NCBI GenBank assembly: GCA_964270895.1
Contig: OZ185436.1
Strand: one strand, 5' to 3'
DNA from: Podarcis filfolensis
Taxonomy: Eukaryota
Length of the DNA stretch: 64,000 nt
Part shown: positions 19,141 through 64,000 of the stretch, piece after piece
Layout: each line of letters starts with the position of its first letter
How positions within the stretch are numbered: the stretch's first letter is position 1
The notes under the pieces: generated by a model
What the model was told of the DNA's origin: nothing
What the model saw: the letters and a program-made list of their open reading frames with translations, nothing else
The model's database searches: none
Made by a program: the position numbers and the translations under genes

Positions 19141-19299
19141 CTGGGAGCTCTGTTGCCTTTTCTCCTGGGAACTTGAGCACCAGCAGCAGTGCCAGTAGCA
19201 CCTTGGGCAGCCCTGAGAACGAAGAGTATATCCTGTCTTTTGAGACCATTGACAAGATGAGAAGAGTCAGCTCCTACTCTTCACTTAATTCACTGATAG
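19141..19299 (+). CDS. RPTOR: Raptor exon 20, (S)GSSVAFSPG...KMRRVSSYSSLNSLI
   Basis: tcttcaacag|CT...G|gtgagc; 159 nt, phase 1-1; S791/S792 equivalents. Confidence 0.97.
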
Positions 19300-27671: not shown

Positions 27672-30600
27672 GTAAACTATTGAGTTCTCAAGATTTCGCA
27701 AACTATAAATAAGTGGCTCTTGCACTTCTCCTTTTGGAAGGCTTTCTGTAATAATGTTACCAGTCAGTGAGAGCTTGTAGAATAGATTCTCACATAAATT
27801 TGCTTATTTTGGTTGTTACTTTTTATTTATAGTCTACTTTAATCAAAGAGCTATAGCCTGAGGAATAGCACTTAAAATGAAAAGAAATAGTTAATTCTCC
27901 ATACCCTGCAAACAAAACAACAACAACAAAAACTTGCAATTTAAATCAGGTACAGGTCATACAGGGGGAAAGGGGAAATTTTTAAATTATGCATTATGTT
28001 ATTAGACTGAATGTCTTAATCCCATTAATAAACTTGTTCTGATTTCCTGTAGCAGTCCCCTTCCCAAAAACACAATATACAGCTATTCATCCTAGTTCAG
28101 CTCTGCTTTTGTGGAGGGGTTGAAACTTAACTCTTAACATTGCCCTTCTTCGCCTTCTGCAACTCTGCCCTCTGAGGGGAGAAAGAAAAAGGAGAGTAGA
28201 TGCTCAAACAGCTCCAGAAGAGCATAATAGGCAATTGCTAGCAGGAAGGTAGCAGTTATTAGAAGGAACTGAATTATGTAACATGAATAACCCTGTAGAT
28301 AGGGCTTTCCTTTAATGTCTAGCTAGTAAATTTGACTTGCGGTTTTGGTTATTTTCTTTGCAAACTCATTTAGATTATGCAAGTGAGAGTAAGACTGGAT
28401 TGCAGATTGAAGCCACAACTGCTGCCCAGTGCAGGTGATCTAGTACATGTGAGTCAGCATGCAGACACCCCATCCCACTCCTCACTTCTCCTGTATGGAT
28501 TGAAAGCACCACCATTATTGCTATTCTTCATTTTGCAAGGATGATGTGTGTTTCACTCCAGAGGCTGCCATCACTGCTGTTTTTGGAATTATTAGCTCAA
28601 ATAGTGTTGATAAGTGGGCTGTTTTGGAAATCACTTGTGATAACAAATCTTCTACCACAAACAAAGCACTACCTAAACATTTAGATAATATTTGCTCTTG
28701 AAAATACTACCCCCATCACTCTCTAGATTGCAGCTAGGGGCTATTTGCATATTGTCTTTGTTATGTTCTTGGCTCAAGCCCTTCTGGTTGCTCCAACAAA
28801 CAAACAAGCATGAACCAGTCCAACATGAGGTGAGATCTCTTGCTGATTATTCATTCCAACAATGTAGCTCAAGAACTTGAGGCTAAATGTGCTATGAGAG
28901 ATGTCACTATTTTAGTGTGCTGAGAGGTGTCATGTTTAAACCTGTTGTTCTCCTTGCAGTGCTCTTTTTTCTTTTAAAATGTTTCTTTACTGGCACCCAT
29001 GACCCACTGATTAATCTCAGCTGATTGGCTAAATCTCTTTGGGTAGTTTTACGACACTGTACCAGATGAATTTAAGCATAAGGAATGAAAAATCTCGTAC
29101 CTGATACCGAAAATGAATGAAGGGGGAGATTTATATTTTAAATCTCTGTTCTTGCTCGTATCATTGCTTTATCTTATGAATGTAAGTGTAACAACCAACA
29201 ATATGGATCAACAGTATGGATGCACATATACAATGCACTTACCTGTAAACCAGGTTTCTGCTACTTAGATACAATAGAGTATGAGTATGACAGTTCTGGG
29301 TAATCCTTTCTTGCAACAGGGTGATTTAGCAAGCATGGCCTGCAGACTGAGTCATCACCATATTAAGGTGGTGAATTTTTCCTGTGGTGATTTTTCTACA
29401 GCTCTTCCTTTCAACCAGTGTAATAATAGGATTATTCAATGATGCCTCTGGCTATTTGCACATATTGGAATTAAAGCTGATGTACTTTCATGTGTGGCAT
29501 AACAGAATTGTAAGGTGGACAGGATCTATCATGGACCCATGCCATTCCCGACCTCCAGGAAATATATAGAGATGATATATAACAGGAAGCACTACTCAGC
29601 CATATGATTCGCTTTTCCCATTGTTCACTTTGGTTATACAGTTGCTGCTGCCAAATCAGTTAATGGGTTTAGTATGATAATACTTTAAATCATTGTTGAA
29701 CTAGTGGCATTGGCATGGCTGAGAAGCAAGGTCTTCCAATAAGTGGCTATATATGCTCATTCAAAGGGAGCTCAGACAGCAAACAGTGAATAGTGGTATT
29801 ATCTACCGTCTCTGTCAAAGTTGCCTTTTCTCTCCATCTTGAAAGTCCCAAACTTGATATGATAGAAGCTGAGGTGTCCAGGCAGTACCACATTTTATAT
29901 GGTTGGTAGGCACACATGTGCTATATGTTTCTGAAGGCGGAGGAGGAGGAAGAGGAGTCATATTGTGACTTCTTCATCATAATTATGGATGGCATCACCA
30001 GGTAAATAAAAATTTCATTATATTTCTGGACACCACAACCTGCATTTCTGTTTATATTTTATACAATATACATCACCATATTTTGGAGGGAACCATTTCC
30101 TTAGCTTGCAAATAAATTACACACACACACACACAACCCAAATGCTTTGTGGTTATATCGCTAAGGAAAACCCATGGCAATTGTGCAGGTGCTCAGACTT
30201 GGGAGGGGAGAGGCCATGTCCCACCACAATCAAAGAAGCTTGGGATAGCTCAAGTCCAGATGGCCTTAGAATTTGCAAATATGATAAGGTTAATATGTGT
30301 GACTGCAGAAACCAGGGATTGGGAAATAGTAAAGGGAGCAGAAAATGTTCTTTGTGGCCAAGGATTTTAGCTGTTGCCAATTATTCACCTGCCATTCATC
30401 CTTTGTGTCTCCTACTCTTTGAGCTTTTACAACATCATGTAGAATAAATAAATTGTGGCATTTCACATTTGGCGTACTTGTTCAGATAGTCTTTTAACCT
30501 GGTGGTAATAGATGTTTTCTGCTCACACAAGAATTTCTGGATCACATCCCAGAATGTACTATGCATTTTCTTGGCTCCATAAAGAAGACAACGGAAAATG

Positions 30601-32320: not shown

Positions 32321-34003
32321 TGAACATCTTCTCTTCTTTCAGAGCACTGTATTGTGTACCACCAAACACAGACAAATACTGTTGTTGAGTCATAACAATA
32401 TTGTTATTAATGCTAAATATTTCAGTTCCGATCCAAAGTTCCTGCTGCAGAAAGCTGTCCTCTGAAAAGCCTCCCTAAAAAGTCTCCTAGTTTCCTGAAG
32501 TCAGTTTTATTTGCAGACAAGGAAGGAAAGCTGTTTTCTCCTATGTTAACATAAGTGCCTTCCATATTGCAAGCTAACCTGTGGCCCTCCAGGTGTTGCT
32601 AGACTACAGCTTTATAGCTTCAACCACCCCTGACCTTTGATCATGGAGTCCAACAATATATGGATGTATCCTAAAAGCCTTTGAGGATTTCTTTGGAATT
32701 TTGGGAAACATAAAGTATGTTTTTGCTCAGATGGAGAAGAATCTTTTGTCCGGTCCTAGAAGACCATATAAAGGTTCTGGGTTTTAATAACTGCATGTCC
32801 TCAACAGAAGAGAATCAGCAGGGGAATAAGCGTTAGACAATAAGGGTTTCAAAAATATAATTTACTGCTACACAAATTCCATAGCCATCTAAGACATGAT
32901 GGAGAGCCAATTTGATCCCAAGATGTAACCTGTCACGCTGGCTGTTCCAGCAGCAGCTTCTCACTCTTATAGATGTGGCTGTTATTACATCAACTGCAAT
33001 TTCCCCGATCAAGGGTATAGTGCTAGTGATGGCCTTGAACCTTTTCCTAATGAGCTGGGGAGGAGAGAAGAAAACTGCCTCAAAAGGCCAGCTCAACAAG
33101 GGGAAATCTGAAGGAGAGAGGCAATATGTGCCCTCAAGCACGGCTGCTGCAATCATCCAGTTTGCACCCAGCAATTTTGGGTGTAAAGTGCAAATGCAGG
33201 TACAATTGGAAAATGGCCTGCTGTTCATGCTATTTATTTCCCCGAGTTCCCAAATGCCTTGTCAGTGGCTCTTTACACCTTTTCTGTAAACTGCAGAGAT
33301 ATTAATGGTCATAGTTTCAGTCTCTTTTGGATTTGACACACCCCTATAAGTGAAGTATCTGCTGAATAAGAAGCCTGGTTTTTCACACTTCTTTGCCTGT
33401 TGTTCCCATCTCTCCCTTATCTAAGATTTCTAAAGGCAGTGAAAGAAGCTTATCTGAATACCTTTTGAGAATTGCAAGAGCTGCTGCACATATTTTCCTG
33501 CTTCTTTGTTGTTATGGTTGTTGTTGGTTTTAAAGTTATTGCTGCTGTTGTTTCTGAAGTTATTGCCTCAGCATCTATTACCTCACGCCAGCCCAGTATC
33601 TCAAGTGAATTTGGGGGGAAGTGCCTCCAGTTATGAGGTCAGAAAGTAGTTTTTCTTCCCTGAACGCAGAGGGAATTTTATTCCATCTATGGTTTCAGGT
33701 GGGTTAAGCTACTTTTATAAAGCACCATTTGTCCATTTGTTTGCAGATTTGAATGTTCTAGTTTCTGGTAATCTGTCGCCACAGTATATTGGAAGGGACT
33801 TTTGCTGAGGCATCAAGTTCAAGTTGGGCATTTTGGTCAGATTGGTCATTTTAATGAGTTTTTTATTTTATAAAGGTAACCTCATTTGCCTGTTTTCCAT
33901 TGCCAAATCCTGCCCCCAAAGTACCAATGCAAATGTTAACATATTATATCTTGCATATGAATTAGGAACCTTTTATTAATAAGCATCAGATGAACCCTTA
34001 TGT

Positions 34004-50956: not shown

Positions 50957-51019
50957 GCTACACAAGGATCACTGCCATGGAATATCTGAATGAACAAGGC
51001 TGTTCTCTGCTCCTGACTG
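50957..51019 (+). pseudogene. 63-bp intronic copy of part of RPTOR exon 27 (source 54322-54384)
   Basis: 59/63 identity by manual alignment; flanked by imperfect direct repeats at 50930-50954 and 51016-51045. Confidence 0.92.
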
Positions 51020-53329
51020 TTTCCTGACTAACCCAGGAGTTTCAGTGTGCTCCAGTTATATTGTTTTCCTGGGGTGGCAAGTTCTTTCCCTACAAGTTGT
51101 AGCCCCTTCTTCCTATCCTTGTGTGCCTGTGTTTTAAACAGGTATTTTAGTCCTTGCCTAAGTCAGCTTTTCACTACATTCATTCCACTTTGCATCACTG
51201 AGGTCTGGTTTTTAATGTGAGCCGAGAGAGAGTGACAGACAGACAGACAGACACAGAGGGAGAAGACTAATGTGTCTCTCTCAGCAGCAGGACACTTGCC
51301 CTCAACCCCATCTCCTCTTGCGTCCTGTGTACATGCTCCTTTTCGCACGTATGTTGCGTGGGTGCGTTAGTTTAGTAGTGGTTAGAATTAATTAGCTAAT
51401 TCTCCCTAACCCAGGAAATGTGCATGTTGTAGCTGAGCTATTCCCCACTGACATTCGAAGCATGTGCATATTTTGATTGTGTGTGCGTGCTCAGTAATCC
51501 TTATCCCCATGTTAAGATCTGTGCGTAAATGTAAGTAAATCTGCACATGTAATTCTATTGCTGCTGTCTAAAGGTGGGATTCCGGGGGTGGGTGGGGGGT
51601 GCATATGTGAAACATGTGCCTACCAAGGAAGCTTGCTAACACTGAATGCTAGCAGCAGAGCTTTTGGACAGTCAGAAATGGCATGCCCCACCAAAAGCAA
51701 AATATTCGAGATAAAACGAATTGCTCAAAGACGTTGAACATATGCTGCTGAACATAGCTAGGCTTTTCTTCCATCCGGTAGAGTTTAGATGGATGCGGCA
51801 GCTTGTTTACAAGGGATGGTGTTGCAGGCGAAATGCCAGCATTTTCACCTTCTCCAAAGAGCAGAGTCAGAGTTTGATAGGTGTCTAATACTGCTGGGGT
51901 TTCCAGCAAATTAGCTTGTGATCTGCAAGAGTCTGCTGTATCCCCTTCACATTCACAAGGCACCTAAAGGGTTTCAGTATCCTTCGGTTTTATGGGGCCC
52001 CATAAATGATTGTTTATTCATATCCTGTCATGTTTCTGCAATGCTTTTTTATGTGTGGCCTCTTTTACACTTACAGCTTCTTTCCCTTCATATACATTGG
52101 ACTCACGTTTCATCAGCATATATATTCAGTGCTGTACTGAAAGCGCATCTTGCTTATTTATAACTCTTTATTCATTTACGAGGCAGCAGTCAGGCTGTGG
52201 GCTTTATTGTTTAATGACAGAGGATATTTGAATTCCCTGTATCTTGCTGAAGTGGCCCCTTAATTTTGCATAGCTGTGGTTAGAATTGACATTTCTACTC
52301 TTTCTGCAGCTTGGTTGGCCAGTGAATAAGAGCAAATTTGTGCTGTTCACCTATACTGCCATTTTCAGCATGACTCAAGATTGCTCTCACCAGGGATGAG
52401 AAAATTTGGGGGGACTTTCCGTCTACAGATGTCAGCTGGGGAAAGATTAGTGTGAAATATTAATCTGTCGAGAGAGATGGTCTGTCTCTCACATATAGCT
52501 CAGTCCTTTGAGACCTAGTAGGCTTGAGTCAGCAGAGAAGAGAGCCTTACATTTTTATTTTAAAGGAACAATGCATACAACTCTGCAAACAGTTAAGGAT
52601 GCCAGTTTCAGAATTTTATTTTGCATGCTCTTAGCAGTGGTAGAAACACTGGAGGATTTTTTTGGTGCTGTCCATTTTGGAAATCTGCCTCCACTTACCT
52701 GCAAAAAACATTTTGTCACAAGAATATATTCAGATTTGCTTTACTCCAGAAAATGATGTTCTTGTGTGAACTTGCCATTAATATTTGGGGGCTTTGAGCC
52801 CTATTTAAGTATGAAACTTCGGCTCTTATCGTAGTTGAGCATTATATTGTAAAGGTATCTCTTTTTTCACCTGCCCATTCAGCCTTTATTGGCATAGTGC
52901 AATAAGTATTTAACAAGGCACAAACATTTTGCCTGCTTAATCCAATCTGTTCTCGTCTTAACCTCCTTAGAGCGCTGCTATCAAAATCTGAAAAGATTTG
53001 CGAGATCTCCAATTTGTCAGGAATGCAAGGCAATGTCAGGAGAGGCTATCAAACAGTGAAGACAACTTGGCAGTCTTCCCCTGTGCTCTCACACAGAAAA
53101 TAGACATGTAATGCAGGAGGGAATCAAGTACAACAGTTGGGCACTTGCTGAGTGATGTTTTCATTTTCTGTGTGGACTGAGGACAAATAAAGATAGCCTG
53201 GACAGAAACAGGGTGGGTTCCCTCCTTTAATTTGAGGAGACCAGGCATAGCATATTTCAAGAACCTCCGTTGCAGAATACTAAATTATGTACATTCAATG
53301 TAGTCTTGCGTATCAGAATTTATTTTTTA

Positions 53330-54265: not shown

Positions 54266-54390
54266 TTTTTGGGATTGGGAAAAGGGAGAAAAGCTGGACT
54301 ATTTTCACAATGGGAACCCACGCTACACAAGGATCACCGCCATGGAATATCTGAACGGACAAGACTGTTCTCTGCTCCTGACTGCTACAG
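54266..54390 (+). CDS. RPTOR: Raptor exon 27, FWDWEKGEKLDYFHNGNPRYTRITAMEYLNGQDCSLLLTAT(D)
   Basis: tttcccag|T...G|gtgggt; 125 nt, phase 2-1. Confidence 0.97.
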
Positions 54391-56982
54391 GTGGGTATGG
54401 CCTCATTATTTTTTTTAAGGGAGGGCTAAGAAAGTGTTTTCTGCCCTGTCTATGGACCTCATCTTCATTTCAGTCACACAGAGGTGTATTGTTATACATG
54501 CTTCCTTATTTTATTCATCTGATTTAGTAAAGGGACCACCTTTTAATAAAGGTTGTATTTTTTTGAACCAAGAGTGAAAACTTCCATAGCCTTTTATTTT
54601 GCACTTTCTTCAGTGCATCCTGCCAACAAACTTATTGAGTCACTCACAAAACTCTTCAAGCACACTGGAGCTTCTCTGTTTGAGAATCTTCCTGTGAGCT
54701 GTCTCTCACCATGTCTGTTCCCCTCACCTTCATTTCATCCCAAGTTCGGAAAATGCTTTGGGAATCGGGACAGTCTAGCACTAGCCTGTTCCCTCATACC
54801 AGTTTTTCTCATCCTGACGTCAGGAATCCTAACCATCAGTTTTAACCCCTGTGCACTTTCTTTGGCCGTCACAACTCCAGAGTAATCCTCTGCTCCATAG
54901 GACTTCAGGCCGGGTTAACAGATAAAGTAATCTTCTCCAGAGACCATTATTCTTGCAGGGTGTGTCTTCAGGAATATTGTGCTATGTGACAATCCCTTCC
55001 AAAAGCAGCATTATTTTGTGCAGTCTATTGCCCAGCATATTTTTCCTAAGCATATCATTGTTGTGCTAGTGAACAACACTAATGTTGAGTGCATAAGCAA
55101 GACTCCAGGCTCCCATGAACTAAGTTTATGGTACAGTTAATGAATAAAGCTTTGTCCATAACAAGCAGGAAGAAGCTGAACTACTGAGTCTATCTTCATT
55201 AACCATGTTTGAATACTGCTGCTATCACCAATTTAGAGAGACAGAGACTTTAAAAAAACACAAAACAGCATCAAAACAGCACTTCAGACAAATTTGCTTG
55301 GAAGGATACAGTTAATCCCATTCATTTATTACAGTGACTACTGAAACAGATATATTAAGGCAAAATGTTTTGGCTTCTATTTTCTGTGGCTCCCTTTGAC
55401 TCTCGTGTCAGTCAAAGGGTGCTGTAGTCGTCTTACCACCTTGACTATAGCACCCTTGATTTATATGAGAGCTGGTGAAGAAAGTGGAAGCTGAAATGTT
55501 TTGCTATAATACCTCCATTTCAGTAGTCCCTCTACAGATAGATATGGGGATGGTGGGGAGTGAGCACTGTACTATTTTTAGATTAGAGCATCTTCAATGT
55601 TCCTGTCTAGTCTCAAGTATATAAACTAATAAAACATGTGCTGCTATATACTGTTGTAGCAGCAGCAGCAGCAGCATAAAGTGCTGTTTTCCCTGTTTCC
55701 TTAAACAGCTGGATTTTTTTTATTGCTGTAGTGTTTGACTTAATAAGGAAAATTGGGCCAACGAACTATGATACAGCTAAAGCATTACTCCCATAAACAG
55801 TGGGGGAAAATGTTTGCTGAATGACAAGAGGGAGTAACAAATAAGATGAAGGTTTGGAGAAATAAGGTGCTGCAAGCAGACTGGTCTTAAAGATTGCCAT
55901 GCCAGGCTAGAATCATTCATAAGATCCTTGCTCATTTTCAGGGGGAAAACACACTAAAAGAACACTTCAAGGAAATGAATAAAATAGAAAGCCAGCACAA
56001 TCTTTATATTACATGTTATCCAGTTTTGTCATAATGTGTGCCTCTAATTTAAAATCAAAAGGAGCTTCCTGTATGGTACCTATATGTTTTGCCCATAGGG
56101 CAAATAATGGTTTGGGAGAATATTTCTTAGGAAAGTGTTTCATGGATAAAACTTTAACCTACCTACCTTAATGCTGCAACGCAACCTAGATCCTTTCCCC
56201 CTGCCTTTAGTGGCTACTGTTACACCAATGGGAGATCCAGTCCCCATCTCTTCTTGTAATATAACTCTCAGTGGGTGTTTCCACATTGCAGTTATTGGAA
56301 ACTCTGTGTTGCTCCTGCAGGGCACATACAGTCTCATTCTCATCAAAATGCAACCCCATATTATTTTTCCCCATTTAATCCAGATTGATTGTTTACCCCC
56401 TCCTTTTTTTAACTTATCAGAATTTTCACAGAACAGGTAAATCCAGATTAAATGTGGGGAAATGTGGGGTGGCATTTTGATGAGAGCAGTTTTGTGTGGA
56501 TGCTGCAGAACTGTTACATTCATGGACAGCATAGAGTACCAGTGATCGTCTAATTCAAAATCAAAACTGGGATAATGCTAGGACCGCAGGAAGCAAAATT
56601 CCTTCCAAAATGGCTGACTTAATTACCAGTAAGGCCGTCTGGAAATACATAATCTATATTGCTGTCAAGCTAGGTTGCTGCCTGTGACTCTGAATGTGGC
56701 AGAGGATAGTGGAGCTTGGCATATTACTCCCTTACTTAAGAGGCAAACAGACTCAACAATATGATTAGAAAGTGTCAGATCAAGCTTTCCATAGTAACAA
56801 TTGATCTCTCCATAAGGATGCCTGCTTCCTGTTTGGAGAACCATGGTTTAGTGGAATCTGTCTGAAGCGGCATGAATTTTCTGCTGGAGCCAAATCAGTA
56901 ATGGTGATTAACTTATGGCACTGGGTAAGCCCAGCTTCTGGGCTGAATTCCCTTATAATTTTCTTTCTGTCATTCCTTCAAG

Positions 56983-57087
56983 ATGATGGTGCTATAAGGG
57001 TGTGGAAAAACTTTGCTGACCTGGAGAAGAATCCAGAGATGGTAACGGCCTGGCAGGGCTTGTCAGACATGCTACCAACAACACGCG
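56983..57087 (+). CDS. RPTOR: Raptor exon 28, DGAIRVWKNFADLEKNPEMVTAWQGLSDMLPTTR(G)
   Basis: ccttcaag|AT...G|gtaggt; 105 nt, phase 1-1; AAG acceptor; I did not find the next constitutive exon (GAGMVVDW...) in the window. Confidence 0.97.
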
Positions 57088-58962
57088 GTAGGTATGACCT
57101 AGCATTCTGTCTGGATTTGAAGGGGCAAAAGTAGTTTGCCATCATTTGGAACAGGGTTAGGTAACATGGAGTGGTCTTCACTGTCTACAGTAATACCTTG
57201 TTAACAGTGTTTTGGTCTTGATGGAGCTGGTGAGAAATTTCTGCCCTGCAATACTTTAAAAACAAATAATAAATGTAAGATTAAGCAGAGATGCCAGATG
57301 GGGAATAGATGCAATCTTTTTCATAGTGCTGAACAGAGGAGTACAGGTGAGTTCTCTTCCTGGACTGCGCTGGAGTTTCATCACTGGAGGTCAGATCTAA
57401 CTTTTTTGCTTCTAGATAGAGAATTGTGTGAGGCTTTTCTGAGCACTGCCCTTCCTTGGACTCATTATTGCAGCTGGTTTTCTCCTCTCACTTTGGGGTT
57501 TTACCCCAAAAACTCACCTCTTGCCACTATCCTTTTTTTTGTTTTGTTTGCTTGTTCCCTTTTGCCCCAGCTCTGCATGCTTCCCATATTACCTTGCTCA
57601 GCCTGCCTTGACTTGGGCACACCGCTTGCAGTATTTCCTGCTGTTCATTGTGGAGGGAAGGTCAAGTGAAACGTCACATTTACAAGATGGTAGTGCAGGT
57701 AGATTTGAGTGTCCCGAACATGTTGAGAATCCAGGCAGGGTTAGGTGTCAACAAGAAACCCATCACTTAACAAGCCCGGCTGAGAGACTGAGGTGCAGTG
57801 TTAGGTGACCAAAAAAAACCCACTATGCCGGATGTGATAATGAAGGATACTTGCTCTGCTTCCAAGACACGAGGAGTCATTAATGCTCTGACAGTTCTCA
57901 TTTCTGAACCTGTGCATCTCAGCACTGAAGCCTGACAACCGCTTATTCGAAAACTTCCTGTTGCTAAACCAGCACTTTGCATTCCCTTTAAAATATTTGT
58001 GCTGGCATAGCCAGTAAGTGATAGTGGTTTGACACGTCAAAATAAAAATCTCTGCCCTTTGAACATTAAGGGTTTTACATTTCAGTAGCGCTGCCTACAT
58101 GTTTTCCTTTAATGTCCTCTTCCTCCCTCACATTGCCCTGCTTTTCCTGTATAATGTGCCTTCTAGCTATTCATTGGAATTCACAGACGATGCCTCACTC
58201 AGATCTTAAAACTTTGACAGACCTTCCTCTGGTTCTTTCCATGGAAAGAATATTACAGTGATTCTGTTCCTCTTCCTTTTGGGCCAGGTAGCCTGAAATT
58301 TGAGGTGCAGCTGCTGCAAACCCGAGCTTCTGTAGCGTGCCATTACATGTGCACAGAACCGATCATAAAGTATGGGAAGTTAGATGTCTGCTATAAACAT
58401 TGCTGTGAGTGAAATCCTGCCATTTACAGGAATATTGTCAATAAGAGCAATGGGGAAGCAGCTAAAAGATGCTTATCTTGCGGTTCTTGAATTCCCTCTG
58501 CTGCTTTGGGTGGAGAGTAGAGTACCAAAGTCAAATCTTGTTGATCTCTCCAGGTCTTGTCTTCACAGTCCCTTTACCAAGCTTTAAAGCTTACTTGATG
58601 TTCATTAAGCACACGTCACCCTAAAGCATCTTGAAAGCGCATATTTGAGAATCAGCATAGCCAGTGCTGGATTACCCAGTAGGTAGACTTAATATGTGCT
58701 GCTTGGGGCACCTGCAAAGTAGGCACACCAAAAATATTAGCGTGGTGTGTGTGTGTGTGTATCAAAACAAGCACTGAATTGGTCATCGTAGGAGAAATTA
58801 GAACTTTGTTAGACTTCCTTATGCTCCACTACACGCTCTTCTCCCATTTTTCTGTTATTTTTATTACTTATCCCCACCGAAACCAATGAATTTATCCAGA
58901 ATTTGCAATCAGAAAATCTAGAAAGAAATTATCTTAACTTTAGCATACTTGTAAGGTTTGTG

Positions 58963-58963
<1 letters not shown>

Positions 58964-58993
<30 letters not shown>
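58964..58993. repeat. (CA)15 microsatellite
   Basis: Pure CA run. Confidence 0.95.
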
Positions 58994-58996
<3 letters not shown>

Positions 58997-59399
58997 ACAT
59001 TAGCAAATAGTTCAAGTACAAATGCACTAAGCAAAAAGGCTAATTTAAATTGAATACGTATAAAGCAGCCAACCCCATCATCCCCAATCAGTGTGGCCAA
59101 GGCTTAGGGGTGATTGGAACTGTAGTGCAAAACATGTAGAGGGCACCAGTTTGCTGGAGGCTGATATTAATGATACTGCGTCCAACGCTGGCAATAATAT
59201 TTGAGAGCTGGCTTTGAAGTCCAAAGAAAGTGCGATAAATCCTGTGTTACATTTTGCTTCATAAAAATAGACAAGCAAAGTTCATAACTAAATTCTGAAA
59301 ATATTCGTCTAAGACACTCATAGTCTGATAGCCAATGCATTGCTTCTCTCAACAATCAGTAAGTTAAACTGGAAATGTAGTTTTCTAACCCATGTAATT

Positions 59400-59522
59400 T
59401 TAGGTTACCAGACGTCCCCTTTTCCCGGGGACAGTCCCTGGATTTACAAATCAGTCCCCATACAAAATCCATTGAAGTTGAAAGGTGTCCCCAGATTCAT
59501 TGAAAAAAATCTGGTAACCTTA
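59400..59522. mobile_element. hAT-Blackjack-like MITE
   Basis: TIR aggttaccaga/tctggtaacct; near-TSD atgtaatt/gtgtaatt; cccggggacagtccc motif like MER94-type elements. Confidence 0.75.
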
Positions 59523-59539
59523 GTGTAATTCCTTTAAAG

Positions 59540-59676
59540 TAGGTGACGAACTTGTGGCCTTCCAGTTAATGTTGAACTTCAACTCCCATTAGCCCCTGCC
59601 ACCATGACCAATGGTTCAGGGATGATGGGAGTTGTAGTGTATCAGCGTTTGCAGGGTCACAGGTTCCCTAATCCTG
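59540..59676. mobile_element. Palindromic hAT MITE
   Basis: Near-TSD ctttaaag/ctttaaaa; caactcccat...cagggatgatgggagttgtagt core. Confidence 0.75.
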
Positions 59677-62045
59677 CTTTAAAAGGTTTAAGAAAAGGCG
59701 AAAACCTGCTATCACATGAACACAACTTGATATGTATTTCTGTACTCTGATATCCTCAGTTCTGATGTTAATAGCCTATAAGCCCTTTGTTATAAATTCT
59801 GAATGAGAGTGACCGTTTTTGGCTAAAAATATACTCTGTTTAGCTATCATCTCTTCTCTTAAAATAATTCATTTTTATTGTTTTGAGTCACTACAAAAAA
59901 AAAAGTTTGAGGCTGAAGAGAAGTGGCATTTCATTGATTCAGTTCAATAAAATGTGTACAAGCAAATGTTGCTTTAACCCTTGGACTCCAGCAGAGGCTG
60001 GTGTGTGCAGTCAAATCCAATTGTATCCTTGGCTCTTCCTTTGAAGTGTCTGCCACTGCTGTTGTCTGTGGCTGCAGTTCAAAAGATGAGAAGACAGGAA
60101 AAACCTGCCCATGTAACAACTGCTTTTAAATAACATTCAGGCATCATAAAAAAATAAAACGTGTAAGAGTAATGAAAACAGAGCCAACCAACATGTTGAC
60201 ATAAAAAATATACCCACGAAGCATTGATTTACAGATGCAGCCTAGTCTGGGTAATGGGCAATGGTTTGTTTTTTGATAGTAAAGATCAGCTGTTCCTGGT
60301 CATCCCCTTTTCACACTTTTCTATAGCATGAGCAAATGATTTCTGTAGAGAAGAGTTGCCCAGGTCCCTTGTGACTGTTGTTTCTGATTTCCACTATGGC
60401 TTGGATTTTCTCCCAGTAATTTCCTCACTGTTTCGGTGAATAAGAAACAGCACTAAGGGAGAGTGATTGTGCTTCCTTTACAGAACTATTAAATTTCTCT
60501 TTCGGTCCTTGATTTTGTTACTACCTATGCATATTGCTGTGGGAATGAGAGGGTTAGTTAAATTCACTCTGTGCAAAGGTGCAGGGTGAATTAAATGAGT
60601 CCTCTGTAGAAATGAGATTGTTGTTAGAAGTGCTGGCCTTTGCTGTGGAGACTGCTGGTGCAGTTTGGCACAGGGCTGTAATCTGACTCCTGTCTCTCTG
60701 AGACCATTGTGCTTGTGGCCTCGATTTTCTGTATGGTGCTTCCTCTTCCTTCCTCTTTTTACATGCTAGTGGAACGATACCTGAATTTTAGCATCCTCTG
60801 CTGTTGGTTGTTTTTCCTCCATCTTTCTCCTCCATCTTCTAATCCTCAGTTGGTGATGTAATCATCTTGATGAAAAATGGGTCACTGACCTCACAAGGGG
60901 ATTGAATGAACAGCAGGAGCAGAGGACACACTTAAAGGAGTGGGTGGACCTGACCTCTTTGTGCAAGCTTTCTCATTTGTGAAGAACAGGCTGGAGTGGA
61001 TTAAGAGGGATGGAAGGAAAGGAATCTTATAAAAGTGTGTGTAATTCTCCAGCAAAACATTCATGTGCCTATATATAGGAAACCCAAAGGCTTCAGCTCT
61101 GTACTGACTACGTACTGCAACAGCAAACAGGTTTTTTTCTTAGCATTGGTTATGCCCTTTCCTGGCTCAAATCTACCAAATACATTCATTGTCCATCTAA
61201 AAGTTAAAAGGATTAGGTCTAAGAAAGACAGGAGCAAATTTCACATTATGCAAAGTCGTAATATTTTGGATCATGTGAAGATTCGAACAGCTGTGTGAGC
61301 ACTAGAGAATCAGGCAGGGGGTGGAGGGAACCACAGAATCTATGCACATTATTATGAGTCAGCTCCAGGTTGGTGCTGAATTGGTGTTGATATAATGACC
61401 ATTTTAATGAAAGCACCCAGGCACCACCTGAAATAGTGCAGGCACAGTTCATATTGTATCACTCCGAAAGAGGTGGGGGGAAGTTGCTGAAATGAACATC
61501 CGAATAAATTCAGCACTTGGCTGTTTTGGCCAAGCAGATCTGTCATTCTGACTTGGTCTGTTCCTCATAACAAGAGATGGACCGGTACTAAGCAAGCCCC
61601 TTTATTCTCCAGGGTTTTCTTTGTGTGTGTGTGGAGTGGTTCTCTTCTAGATGGTTTTGTTTGCAGTTGAACCAGTGAGAAGGGTGACATGGAGAAATAG
61701 GAAAGATATAAAAGCAGGGCAAGCCTTGTGCAAGTTAGTGCTTCAGTAGGTTACAGTCTCAAGGTGATTCCTGAGAGGATGCTACTCCCACAGGTGTCCA
61801 TTTTGTGATTCAGACACTATTTCAAAAGGTCTTGGTTTATGTAGATTGCATGCGAGGTTTCACATGGAATAGGCAGAGTGACTTTTTTCTTTTCTTTTTT
61901 ACAAAGAGGATGTTTAAGATGAGTGGTTTAACAGAAAGCATAATGCAGGCTCCTAGGTCAGACTGTAGACTGGTAGGGGAAGGACATGGCAGTTCCCATC
62001 AGCATAACCACATCCTGTGTATTACCAGTTAGAATTAGGAAGAGT

Positions 62046-62286
62046 GAAGAAGAGCGTTTTGGATTTGATATCCTGCTTTATCACTACCTAAAGGAGTCTC
62101 AAAGCGACTAACATTCTCCTTTCCCTTCCTTCCCCACAACAAACACTCTGTGAGGTGAGTAAGGCTGAGAGACTTCAAAGAAGTGTGACTAGCCCAAGGT
62201 CACCCAGCAGCTGCATGTGGAGGAGTGGGGAAGCGAACCTGGTGCACCAGATTACGAGACTGCCTCTTAACCACTACACCACACTG
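62046..62286 (-). mobile_element. Young tRNA/CORE-type squamate SINE, antisense
   Basis: Reverse complement begins cagtgtggtgtagtggttaagag (A box), has ccaggttcgcttcc (B box) and ends (tct)n. Confidence 0.8.
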
Positions 62287-63362
62287 AAGAGAAAAGAAAA
62301 GCAACAGTATAAGGAACATCTTTCCCTGAGGTCAGATAGGCAGTCCATCTAGCCAAGGAGAAAAAAGGTGGCATATAAATGTAAATAAATAAAGGACTCT
62401 GACTGGTGCTCTCAGACTACCGTACAGAACAAGTGATGCCTTACAATGGAGAGAATGGGCTGTCACCTCCAACTGGTGCATCTCTGACCTCTTTGCGGGC
62501 ATCCATCACCACTGCTTTACTTCCTCCCAGTTTTGGGGCTTGTTTTAAAGGTGAGCCCATGGTGTTTGAGAGTGGCCGATGCAAGTCCTGCCCTGGAAAA
62601 GGTCAAGCAGGTTCTTTTTCTAGAGTTCCTTGGGCAAACCAAGGGCAGCTAGGCTCAGCCTAAGCTGCCCTGTCCTTAACAACTGAGCTGCTGCTGCCAC
62701 CCTGCAGCTCCTCTCATTATCCAGCCTTCTTCCTGATGGCTTCAAATGAATCCCCTTGTACTGCTAATTTCCCCCACTTAAACAGTTGTTTGAGCAGAGT
62801 CCTCTGTAAATTGTCCTTCCTCTCTGAATGAGTGCTCATTAGCAAATCATTGAAGTGTGCTTTGTTGCTGCCTACTGTATTGCTTCACAGCTGAGCTGGT
62901 GGCTCAGTGAGGCCTGAGCAGCACATCGCTTGGCTGTTTGGATTCACCTCTCCCCTCACAGGGTGTTGGGTTTCTTTGTGGGTTTTTCTTTGGTGAGGGG
63001 TCATTTGGAGCGCAGCTTTCATTTCTCACTCCTCCGCTGACAGCAAGGTGCCTTTCATTCTAGGTAGAGTATAGCAGGGCCCTTCTGAGTGGGATTTGAG
63101 CACATGAGCAAAAGAAAACCGGTCTTGCTTTCCTCCTCATGGCTAATGGCTTCCTAGGATGGCTGCTGTGATCAACCTACTCGTCTTCCTTCCTTCCTTC
63201 CTTCCCTGAATGGAGGCCTCTCTGCCGCTACTGCTTCTCTCTAACTGTGTTCTTTTCTGTTCCTTTTGGGTTGCTTTTCCTAATCCTTTTTTTAAGATTT
63301 GTTTTGCTTTGGCTGACCAACTTACCCTTAGCATCAACCCCTTAATCCCTGTCTTCTCACAG

Positions 63363-63410
63363 GTCTGGCCCGAAGGGTTTCAATCTATCTTGACAGAAGT
63401 AAACAGGGAG
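63363..63410 (+). CDS. RPTOR: Candidate alternative 48-nt RPTOR cassette exon, (G)LARRVSIYLDRSKQG(G)
   Basis: Branch-like cttaat plus ccctgtcttctcacag acceptor, GAG|gtgagt consensus donor, phase 1-1, stop-free in the RPTOR frame; no transcript evidence available. Confidence 0.6.
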
Positions 63411-64000
63411 GTGAGTGCTCTCTTTCCTCTTACCTACAATCAGCGCGGGAGGGGTGGTCCTTCTAATCATATGTGGTGTTGTTGTTTTTAAAATGGCATT
63501 CCTTCTAACATCTCCTGGGTCCTGTTAATTCTTGGAAGGCAGCCTAGCTTCTCCTGGCCTTCCCATTCCTTGCTTTGTATTGCTTGTCTGTACTATGCAC
63601 TGTGGGCTTCTACATCTGATATTCTGTCAACATGGGCCTCAAGTGTCCACGTGGAAGAAAGGCAAAGGGAGGAGATTCGTGCATTTTCCTTTGCTTCGGG
63701 AGCCTGATCACAAAATGTGGAAATTGGAAAGTGTTTTCAAGATATGCAGAGGCAATATTGTTGTGTGATCACTTTATACAAGGATCGCAGCAGGCCAGCC
63801 ATGCTCAGGGTACAGCAGCTTCTCGGCCACCACCATTACTCTTAAACAGTTCAAGAGATGGTCTGAAATGTTTGAGCATCTCTTCGTGAAATGCCTCTGT
63901 CTTTGTTGACTGCTACGTTTCTTTGATTTGTAATTATGGGATGCTGAGTGGAAGTAAATGGCAGGTGTGACCTTGTTTCAATCTGGAAAGTTGGTTTCCG

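Follow-up and report, generated by a model that had tools for sequence, protein, structure and literature searches.

Introduction

Within mTORC1, Raptor is the core subunit that recruits substrates. The closest described counterparts of the element analyzed here are a phosphorylated motif in Raptor itself and the class of alternative exons referred to as microexons (51 nt or less), which are short, deeply conserved, and tissue-regulated. Among the kinases with an affinity for basic motifs, AMPK has a substrate consensus comprising a hydrophobic residue at −5, a basic residue at −3 or −4, and a hydrophobic residue at +4, and the PKD/CaMK-type site is described as L-x-R-x-x-S. PKA phosphorylates Ser791 of human Raptor, and this residue is the sole Ser/Thr of the human protein in a PKA RRXS/T-hydrophobic motif (Jewell et al. 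2019, PMC6529218). The present analysis is focused on a 48-nt segment (63363..63410, + strand) of a 64,000-nt stretch of Podarcis filfolensis DNA, referred to as the window, which contains part of the Raptor gene (RPTOR). The segment is very likely a genuine, ancient, and alternatively spliced cassette exon of RPTOR, and the loop that it encodes is probably regulatory. The exon had originally been predicted from the DNA as a hidden feature; however, isoforms predicted for many vertebrates in RefSeq, UniProt (Ensembl-derived), and GenBank already include it, and one of these public gene models is identical to the product of the window. Its existence is, thus, not a discovery. A literature search found no paper on the cassette exon or its peptide.

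Structure of the Cassette Exon and Its Gene

The gene was assigned by tblastn, in which residues 467-1140 of lizard Raptor map to the window in order. When the 16 constitutive exons and the cassette are joined (2020 nt), they form an open frame of 673 aa, which is 100% identical to residues 467-1139 of P0183, the 1351-aa X3 isoform that RefSeq gives for the regulatory-associated protein of mTOR in Podarcis raffonei, and 99.85% identical to the X3 protein of Podarcis muralis. With Paroedura picta isoform X1, the cassette itself aligns at 100% identity (residues 1124-1140), and it also matches the Raptor proteins of Anolis and Ophiophagus; P. raffonei isoform X3 and the 1351-aa isoforms of other squamates, birds, turtles, fish, and a marsupial contain the same feature as the window, with no difference. 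Furthermore, the product of a squamate mRNA contig (L002, described below) matches the Pfam families Raptor_N and WD40, and human Raptor chains in the PDB match with E=8e-87.

The constitutive exon upstream of the cassette, numbered exon 28 in the original prediction, lies at 56983..57087 (+ strand) and ends with ...LSDMLPTTR followed by a single G; its terminus reads ...CCA ACA ACA CGC G|gtaggt at 57087, leaving one codon base over (phase 1). Translation of the 48 nt in the phase of this exon yields the stop-free peptide (G)LARRVSIYLDRSKQG, and the cassette is symmetrical (phase 1-1). Its inclusion adds 16 residues and produces the protein junction PTTR-GLARRVSIYLDRSKQG-G. An AG acceptor and a GT donor bracket the segment in the genomic context ...ccttaatccctgtcttctcacag|GTCTGG...CAGGGAG|gtgagtgct. 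The acceptor region (63340..63362, + strand) comprises a branch-point-like TTAAT (63342-63346), a pyrimidine tract, and a terminal CAG, and scores 11.6 bits, and the donor gtgagtgct (63411..63419, + strand) scores 11.9 bits; both values are approximate, as the position-weight matrix used is a simple one based on vertebrate consensus frequencies. On the + strand of the window, scores this high are reached by just 11 acceptors and 5 donors, and on both strands the cassette is the sole pair at such scores with a spacing of 30-250 nt. Of all 17 Raptor exons located in the window, it has the highest combined splice-site score. The segment accordingly has AG and GT sites, a length that is a multiple of 3, and an open frame in the flanking phase. 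All the elements first read from the letters, i.e., a strong acceptor, a consensus donor, 48 nt in phase 1-1, and the lack of a stop, are seen in the sequence, and both tblastn and the mRNA contigs agree with the proposed in-frame placement between the exon ending in PTTR and that encoding GAGMVVDW.

A repeat or transposon as the origin of the cassette was considered and rejected: blastn of 62901-64000 against the whole window found no second copy of the region, and as a single copy in the window, it gives no sign of a repeat-derived exon. No further Raptor exon was found in 63411-64000 by tblastn of lizard Raptors. Elsewhere in the gene, the exon at 54266-54390 is partially duplicated in an upstream intron (50959-51024, + strand), with about 87% nucleotide identity to the squamate mRNA and 77-82% amino acid identity to lizard Raptors.

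Distribution in Vertebrates

Raptor proteins were collected by phmmer with the 34-aa translation of the upstream exon and then by a word-indexed search for full-length Raptor, and the junction was parsed in each match. The phmmer matches comprised numerous short ORFs extending from the exon into the intron, as well as a single UniRef entry, a fragment from the salmonid Hucho hucho with GLARRVSISLDRSKGQG directly after PTTR. The arrangement PTTR-GLARRVSIYLDRSKQG-GAGMVVDW is found in birds, Paroedura, Anolis, king cobra, frog, gar, bowfin, and dozens of teleosts. An insert is present in 187 of the 226 fetched vertebrate-type junctions; 183 of these inserts correspond to the cassette or a close variant of it, with 138 being identical to the window's. 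The numbers are skewed toward cassette-bearing proteins, as the first query itself had an insert at the site and hit ranking favors the cassette forms. The 183 cassette proteins represent teleosts, gar, bowfin, frogs, turtles, crocodilians, birds, squamates, one marsupial, and one cetacean. Frame and peptide are, thus, kept in other lizards, snakes, birds, frogs, and fish, which is the conservation that had been put forward as a check on the exon. By contrast, the suggestion that the element is non-mammalian does not hold: in the marsupial Macrotis lagotis, five of the eight isoforms predicted contain the identical cassette, and a near copy, GLARKVSIFLDRSKQG, is present in predicted isoform X5 of the cetacean Pseudorca crassidens.

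Conservation extends over the whole 16-mer, including the YLDRSKQG tail, and is not confined to RRVS. Variation is found in several frogs, which have GLTRRVSIYLDKSKQ at the junction, in some salmonid paralogues, in which the Tyr of the motif is replaced by Cys or Ser, and in the cetacean, in which the motif reads RKVSIF. Owing to the cetacean and salmonid variants, the fixed part is the R-[RK]-V-S-I core only. Since the cassette is found in both ray-finned fishes and tetrapods, it probably dates at least to their common ancestor.

Inserts at the Same Junction in Invertebrates

Other inserts occupy the same Raptor junction in invertebrates. The brittle star Amphiura filiformis (P0063, P0324-P0331) has a 15-aa insert, AETVSRTRRLNKERL; one amphioxus haplotype set (Branchiostoma; P0363/P0365/P0366/P0368) has a 27-aa insert; and Lingula (P0002 cluster) has an insert of about 50 aa containing the basophilic Ser motifs KRSRSF and SRMSFY. 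As for the vertebrate cassette, these inserts are placed at the same point, after ...LPSTR, and isoforms occur with and without them; however, they have no recognizable sequence homology to the cassette and probably arose independently. Alternative inserts seem to be tolerated in this loop, which may have gained them repeatedly.

No insert was present at the junction in the hemichordate, sea urchin, crinoid, nemertean, and limpet isoforms examined. Across the isoform sets of hemichordates, echinoderms, amphioxus, molluscs, nemerteans, and Lingula, the junction either is without an insert or has an unrelated one; a pre-vertebrate origin of the cassette is, thus, unsupported, and no homologue of it was detected in these lineages. 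Two database entries encountered in these searches are irregular. Protein P0002 (1104 aa, MetaClust, in the Lingula cluster) contains the C-terminal region twice, once with and once without the junction insert, and appears to be a fusion of two alternative isoforms that arose during assembly or prediction. The 298-aa entry 'endonuclease V isoform X1 [Muntiacus reevesi]' (P0300) falls into the 90% Raptor cluster of P0214 and is probably a mis-joined gene model.

Position of the Loop and Its Kinase Motif

The insertion site of the 16 residues corresponds to the boundary between Gly1124 and Ala1125 in human Raptor. In every solved human chain (5H64, 6BCX, 6U62, and others), the alignment leaves a gap of 16 residues at this point, and the sequence reads PTTRG-AGMVV without the cassette, in agreement with the canonical human sequence cited in the original prediction. 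An AlphaFold2 model was computed for the gecko propeller domain with the cassette, using a 46-sequence alignment (mean pLDDT 75.6). In this model, the propeller strands fold, and the insert forms a loop between the VTAW strand and the MVVDW strand of the C-terminal β-propeller. Residues 106-130, comprising the insert and a few flanking residues, have a pLDDT of about 30 (<50), which denotes uncertainty and does not in itself prove disorder. As modeled, the insert is most likely a flexible surface loop.

The core of the cassette across variants is L-[AT]-R-[RK]-V-S-I. The PKA motif R-R-x-S/T-hydrophobic is matched by RRVSI in the window, with R-[RK]-V-S-I in all variants, and the PKD/CaMK pattern L-x-R-x-x-S is matched by L-A-R-R-V-S, its Leu and Arg being invariant in all variants. 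Regarding the family-wide fit to AMPK, CaMK, and PKD that had been claimed, the PKD/CaMK part stands, whereas the AMPK consensus is matched only in part: Leu at −5 and Arg at −3 fit, but position +4 is Asp, with Leu at +3. The Pro at +2 of a 14-3-3 mode-1 site is absent from the cassette. The pattern RR.S.[YF] has just two occurrences in the three + strand frames of the window, one in the cassette and the other, MRRVSSY, in the exon at 19141-19299; in the latter, RRVSSY (19260..19277, + strand) lies within MRRVSSYSSLNSL and is the counterpart of human Ser791/Ser792. The claimed mimicry between the RRxS motif of the cassette and this MRRVSSY, assigned to exon 20 in the original prediction, is borne out by the RRVSxY core common to both. 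The two motifs differ in three respects. The Ser791/792 motif is placed in a constitutive linker exon and that of the cassette in the β-propeller; the +1 residue is Ser in the former and Ile in the latter; and Ser791 is a demonstrated PKA site, whereas the cassette serine is a candidate.

In the long isoform, the candidate serine would be a second PKA-consensus serine besides the Ser791 equivalent, situated on the β-propeller in a peptide that is nearly invariant in vertebrates. The loop is, we infer, most likely an isoform-specific regulatory site bearing a basophilic kinase motif. That phosphorylation is its real function appears plausible from the motif but has rather less than an even chance, and a docking or structural role, which takes the rest, is about equally likely. 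A more specific proposal, in which the cassette would supply a second, isoform-specific phospho-switch on the β-propeller of Raptor, under cAMP/PKA (or PKD/CaMK/S6K), that is kept at least from fish to marsupials and adjusts mTORC1 in the tissues including the exon, is tentative and rather doubtful. If true, such a switch may have escaped notice because the human cDNAs used for structures and the forms usually studied lack the exon. For signalling work in zebrafish, Xenopus, or chicken, the cassette would make a reasonable and inexpensive target.

The strongest alternative accepts the exon as real but regards the loop as a structural or docking element, acting in partner binding or through propeller surface charge, with phosphorylation uninvolved. 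This alternative is a serious one that falls only a little short of an even chance. The retention of the entire 16-mer, tail included, exceeds what RRVS would account for, and the unrelated inserts at the identical junction in other lineages suggest that the loop position itself matters. However, it is the residues of the basophilic kinase motif that are most rigidly fixed, PKA and AMPK have been proven to target an identical RRVSxY core at another site in Raptor, and the Lingula insert likewise carries its KRSRSF and SRMSFY motifs.

Isoforms and Transcripts

Podarcis raffonei also has a RefSeq isoform without the cassette (X4; P0256, 1335 aa). Among the RefSeq models of the squamates checked, which a second search with the gecko protein had listed, the cassette is present in the 1351-aa isoforms and absent from the 1335-aa isoforms; Raptor isoforms 16 aa longer, which the original prediction had proposed looking for, thus exist as predictions. 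Both model forms are found in about ten squamate species, including members of Paroedura, Varanus, Sceloporus, Tiliqua, Hemicordylus, Heteronotia, Eublepharis, and Candoia, as well as Podarcis muralis, P. raffonei, and Anolis sagrei; the two Sceloporus forms differ solely by LARRVSIYLDRSKQGG at residue 1125. Annotations with a single model that includes the cassette occur as well, e.g., in Prinia, Rana temporaria, Bufo bufo, and Anolis (G1KRA6), and a teleost-type protein (P0045) has the canonical junction.

Direct evidence of inclusion is provided by two assembled mRNAs. The squamate contig L002 (Logan, SRR31912492; 6498 nt) contains an uninterrupted 1352-aa Raptor ORF and is therefore a spliced mRNA. 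It aligns to the window exon by exon, joins 57087|63363, and beyond 63410 continues into GGCGCAGGGATGGTG..., which encodes GAGMVV (GAGMVVDW). The fish mRNA L004 (SRR22402096) has the same exon-cassette-exon joins, and both are, thus, spliced exactly at the predicted sites. These inclusion transcripts come from relatives of P. filfolensis, with L002 as the sole direct squamate transcript, and the status of the exon as alternative rests on the RefSeq isoform pairs in related species.

The exon might instead be effectively constitutive in sauropsids and fish, with the 1335-aa models being artefacts copied from mammalian proteins and no splice switch being present. The many single-model annotations that contain the cassette, its inclusion in the one squamate contig, and its splice sites, the strongest in the window, are consistent with this possibility, which is nevertheless improbable: about ten squamate RefSeq sets show both forms, the canonical junction is found in the teleost-type protein, and a conserved upstream intron flank together with exon nucleotide identity above that of the neighboring exons, both described below, is typical of regulated exons.

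Selection on the Exon and Conservation of Its Upstream Flank

The cassette is identical between the window and L002 at 50 of 50 nucleotides, compared with an identity of 86-99% in the other exons. The genomic sequence of the bird Aleadryas rufinucha (L003) differs from the window at five positions of the exon, all five of which are synonymous; in the fish mRNA L004, five codons differ synonymously, and one Leu is replaced by Ile. This is a coding substitution pattern, the kind of conservation that the original prediction had proposed testing, with the single amino acid change in fish being conservative. Because the peptide remains fixed while the nucleotides change synonymously in bird and fish, the cassette is under purifying selection at the protein level.

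Conservation also extends into the upstream intron. By blastn, window positions 63270-63419 align with 32779-32927 of the bird sequence at 82.7% over 150 nt; approximately 95 nt of the upstream intron aligns at about 80%, and the flank (63270..63362, + strand) is a candidate splicing-regulatory region. In an alignment of 63220-63480, identity fades upstream of about 63270 and collapses right after the donor. Elsewhere in 56500-64000, blastn against the bird finds only the preceding exon and one 20-nt match. The acceptor stretch cccctgtctYctcacag is kept in the bird, the donor gtgagtgct is the same at nine of nine bases, and the branch-point position reads CTGAC in the bird versus TTAAT in the lizard. 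On reading the flanks, nothing convincing was found beside the cassette in the way of an RBFOX GCAUG or an SRRM4-type UGC.

It is very unlikely that conservation is due to an RNA-level splicing or regulatory element rather than to the peptide. The complete nucleotide identity with L002, above that of neighboring exons, and the conserved upstream intron would agree with such an element; however, bird and fish change third positions and the synonymous codons of Arg and Leu while the peptide stays fixed. A chance pseudo-exon, or an annotation artefact propagated by homology and never used, is scarcely credible: vertebrate introns are rich in decoy splice-site pairs and gene predictors copy models across species, but the two independent assembled mRNAs refute this explanation unless both are chimeric, the changes accumulated over about 280-430 My are synonymous (plus the one Leu to Ile relative to fish), and the chance expectation for a symmetric, open pair of equal quality is approximately 0.03 per window on a rough post hoc estimate.

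The cassette exon resembles the microexon class in several respects: it is 48 nt long and symmetrical, places an insert in a surface loop of a folded domain, is extremely conserved, and has a conserved upstream flank. It differs from strict microexons in that its length exceeds the 3-27 nt class and no UGC adjoins the 3′ splice site.

A second in-frame cassette was observed in the window at 28374-28448 (+ strand; 75 nt, 25 aa, IMQVRVRLDCRLKPQLLPSAGDLVH), flanked by ...ctcatttag| and |gtgagtcagcatgc. Its peptide matches a 25-aa insert at residue 841 that distinguishes 1376-aa from 1351-aa isoforms in Sceloporus undulatus and Tiliqua scincoides, and a GCATG is located 6-10 nt into the downstream intron (28454-28458).
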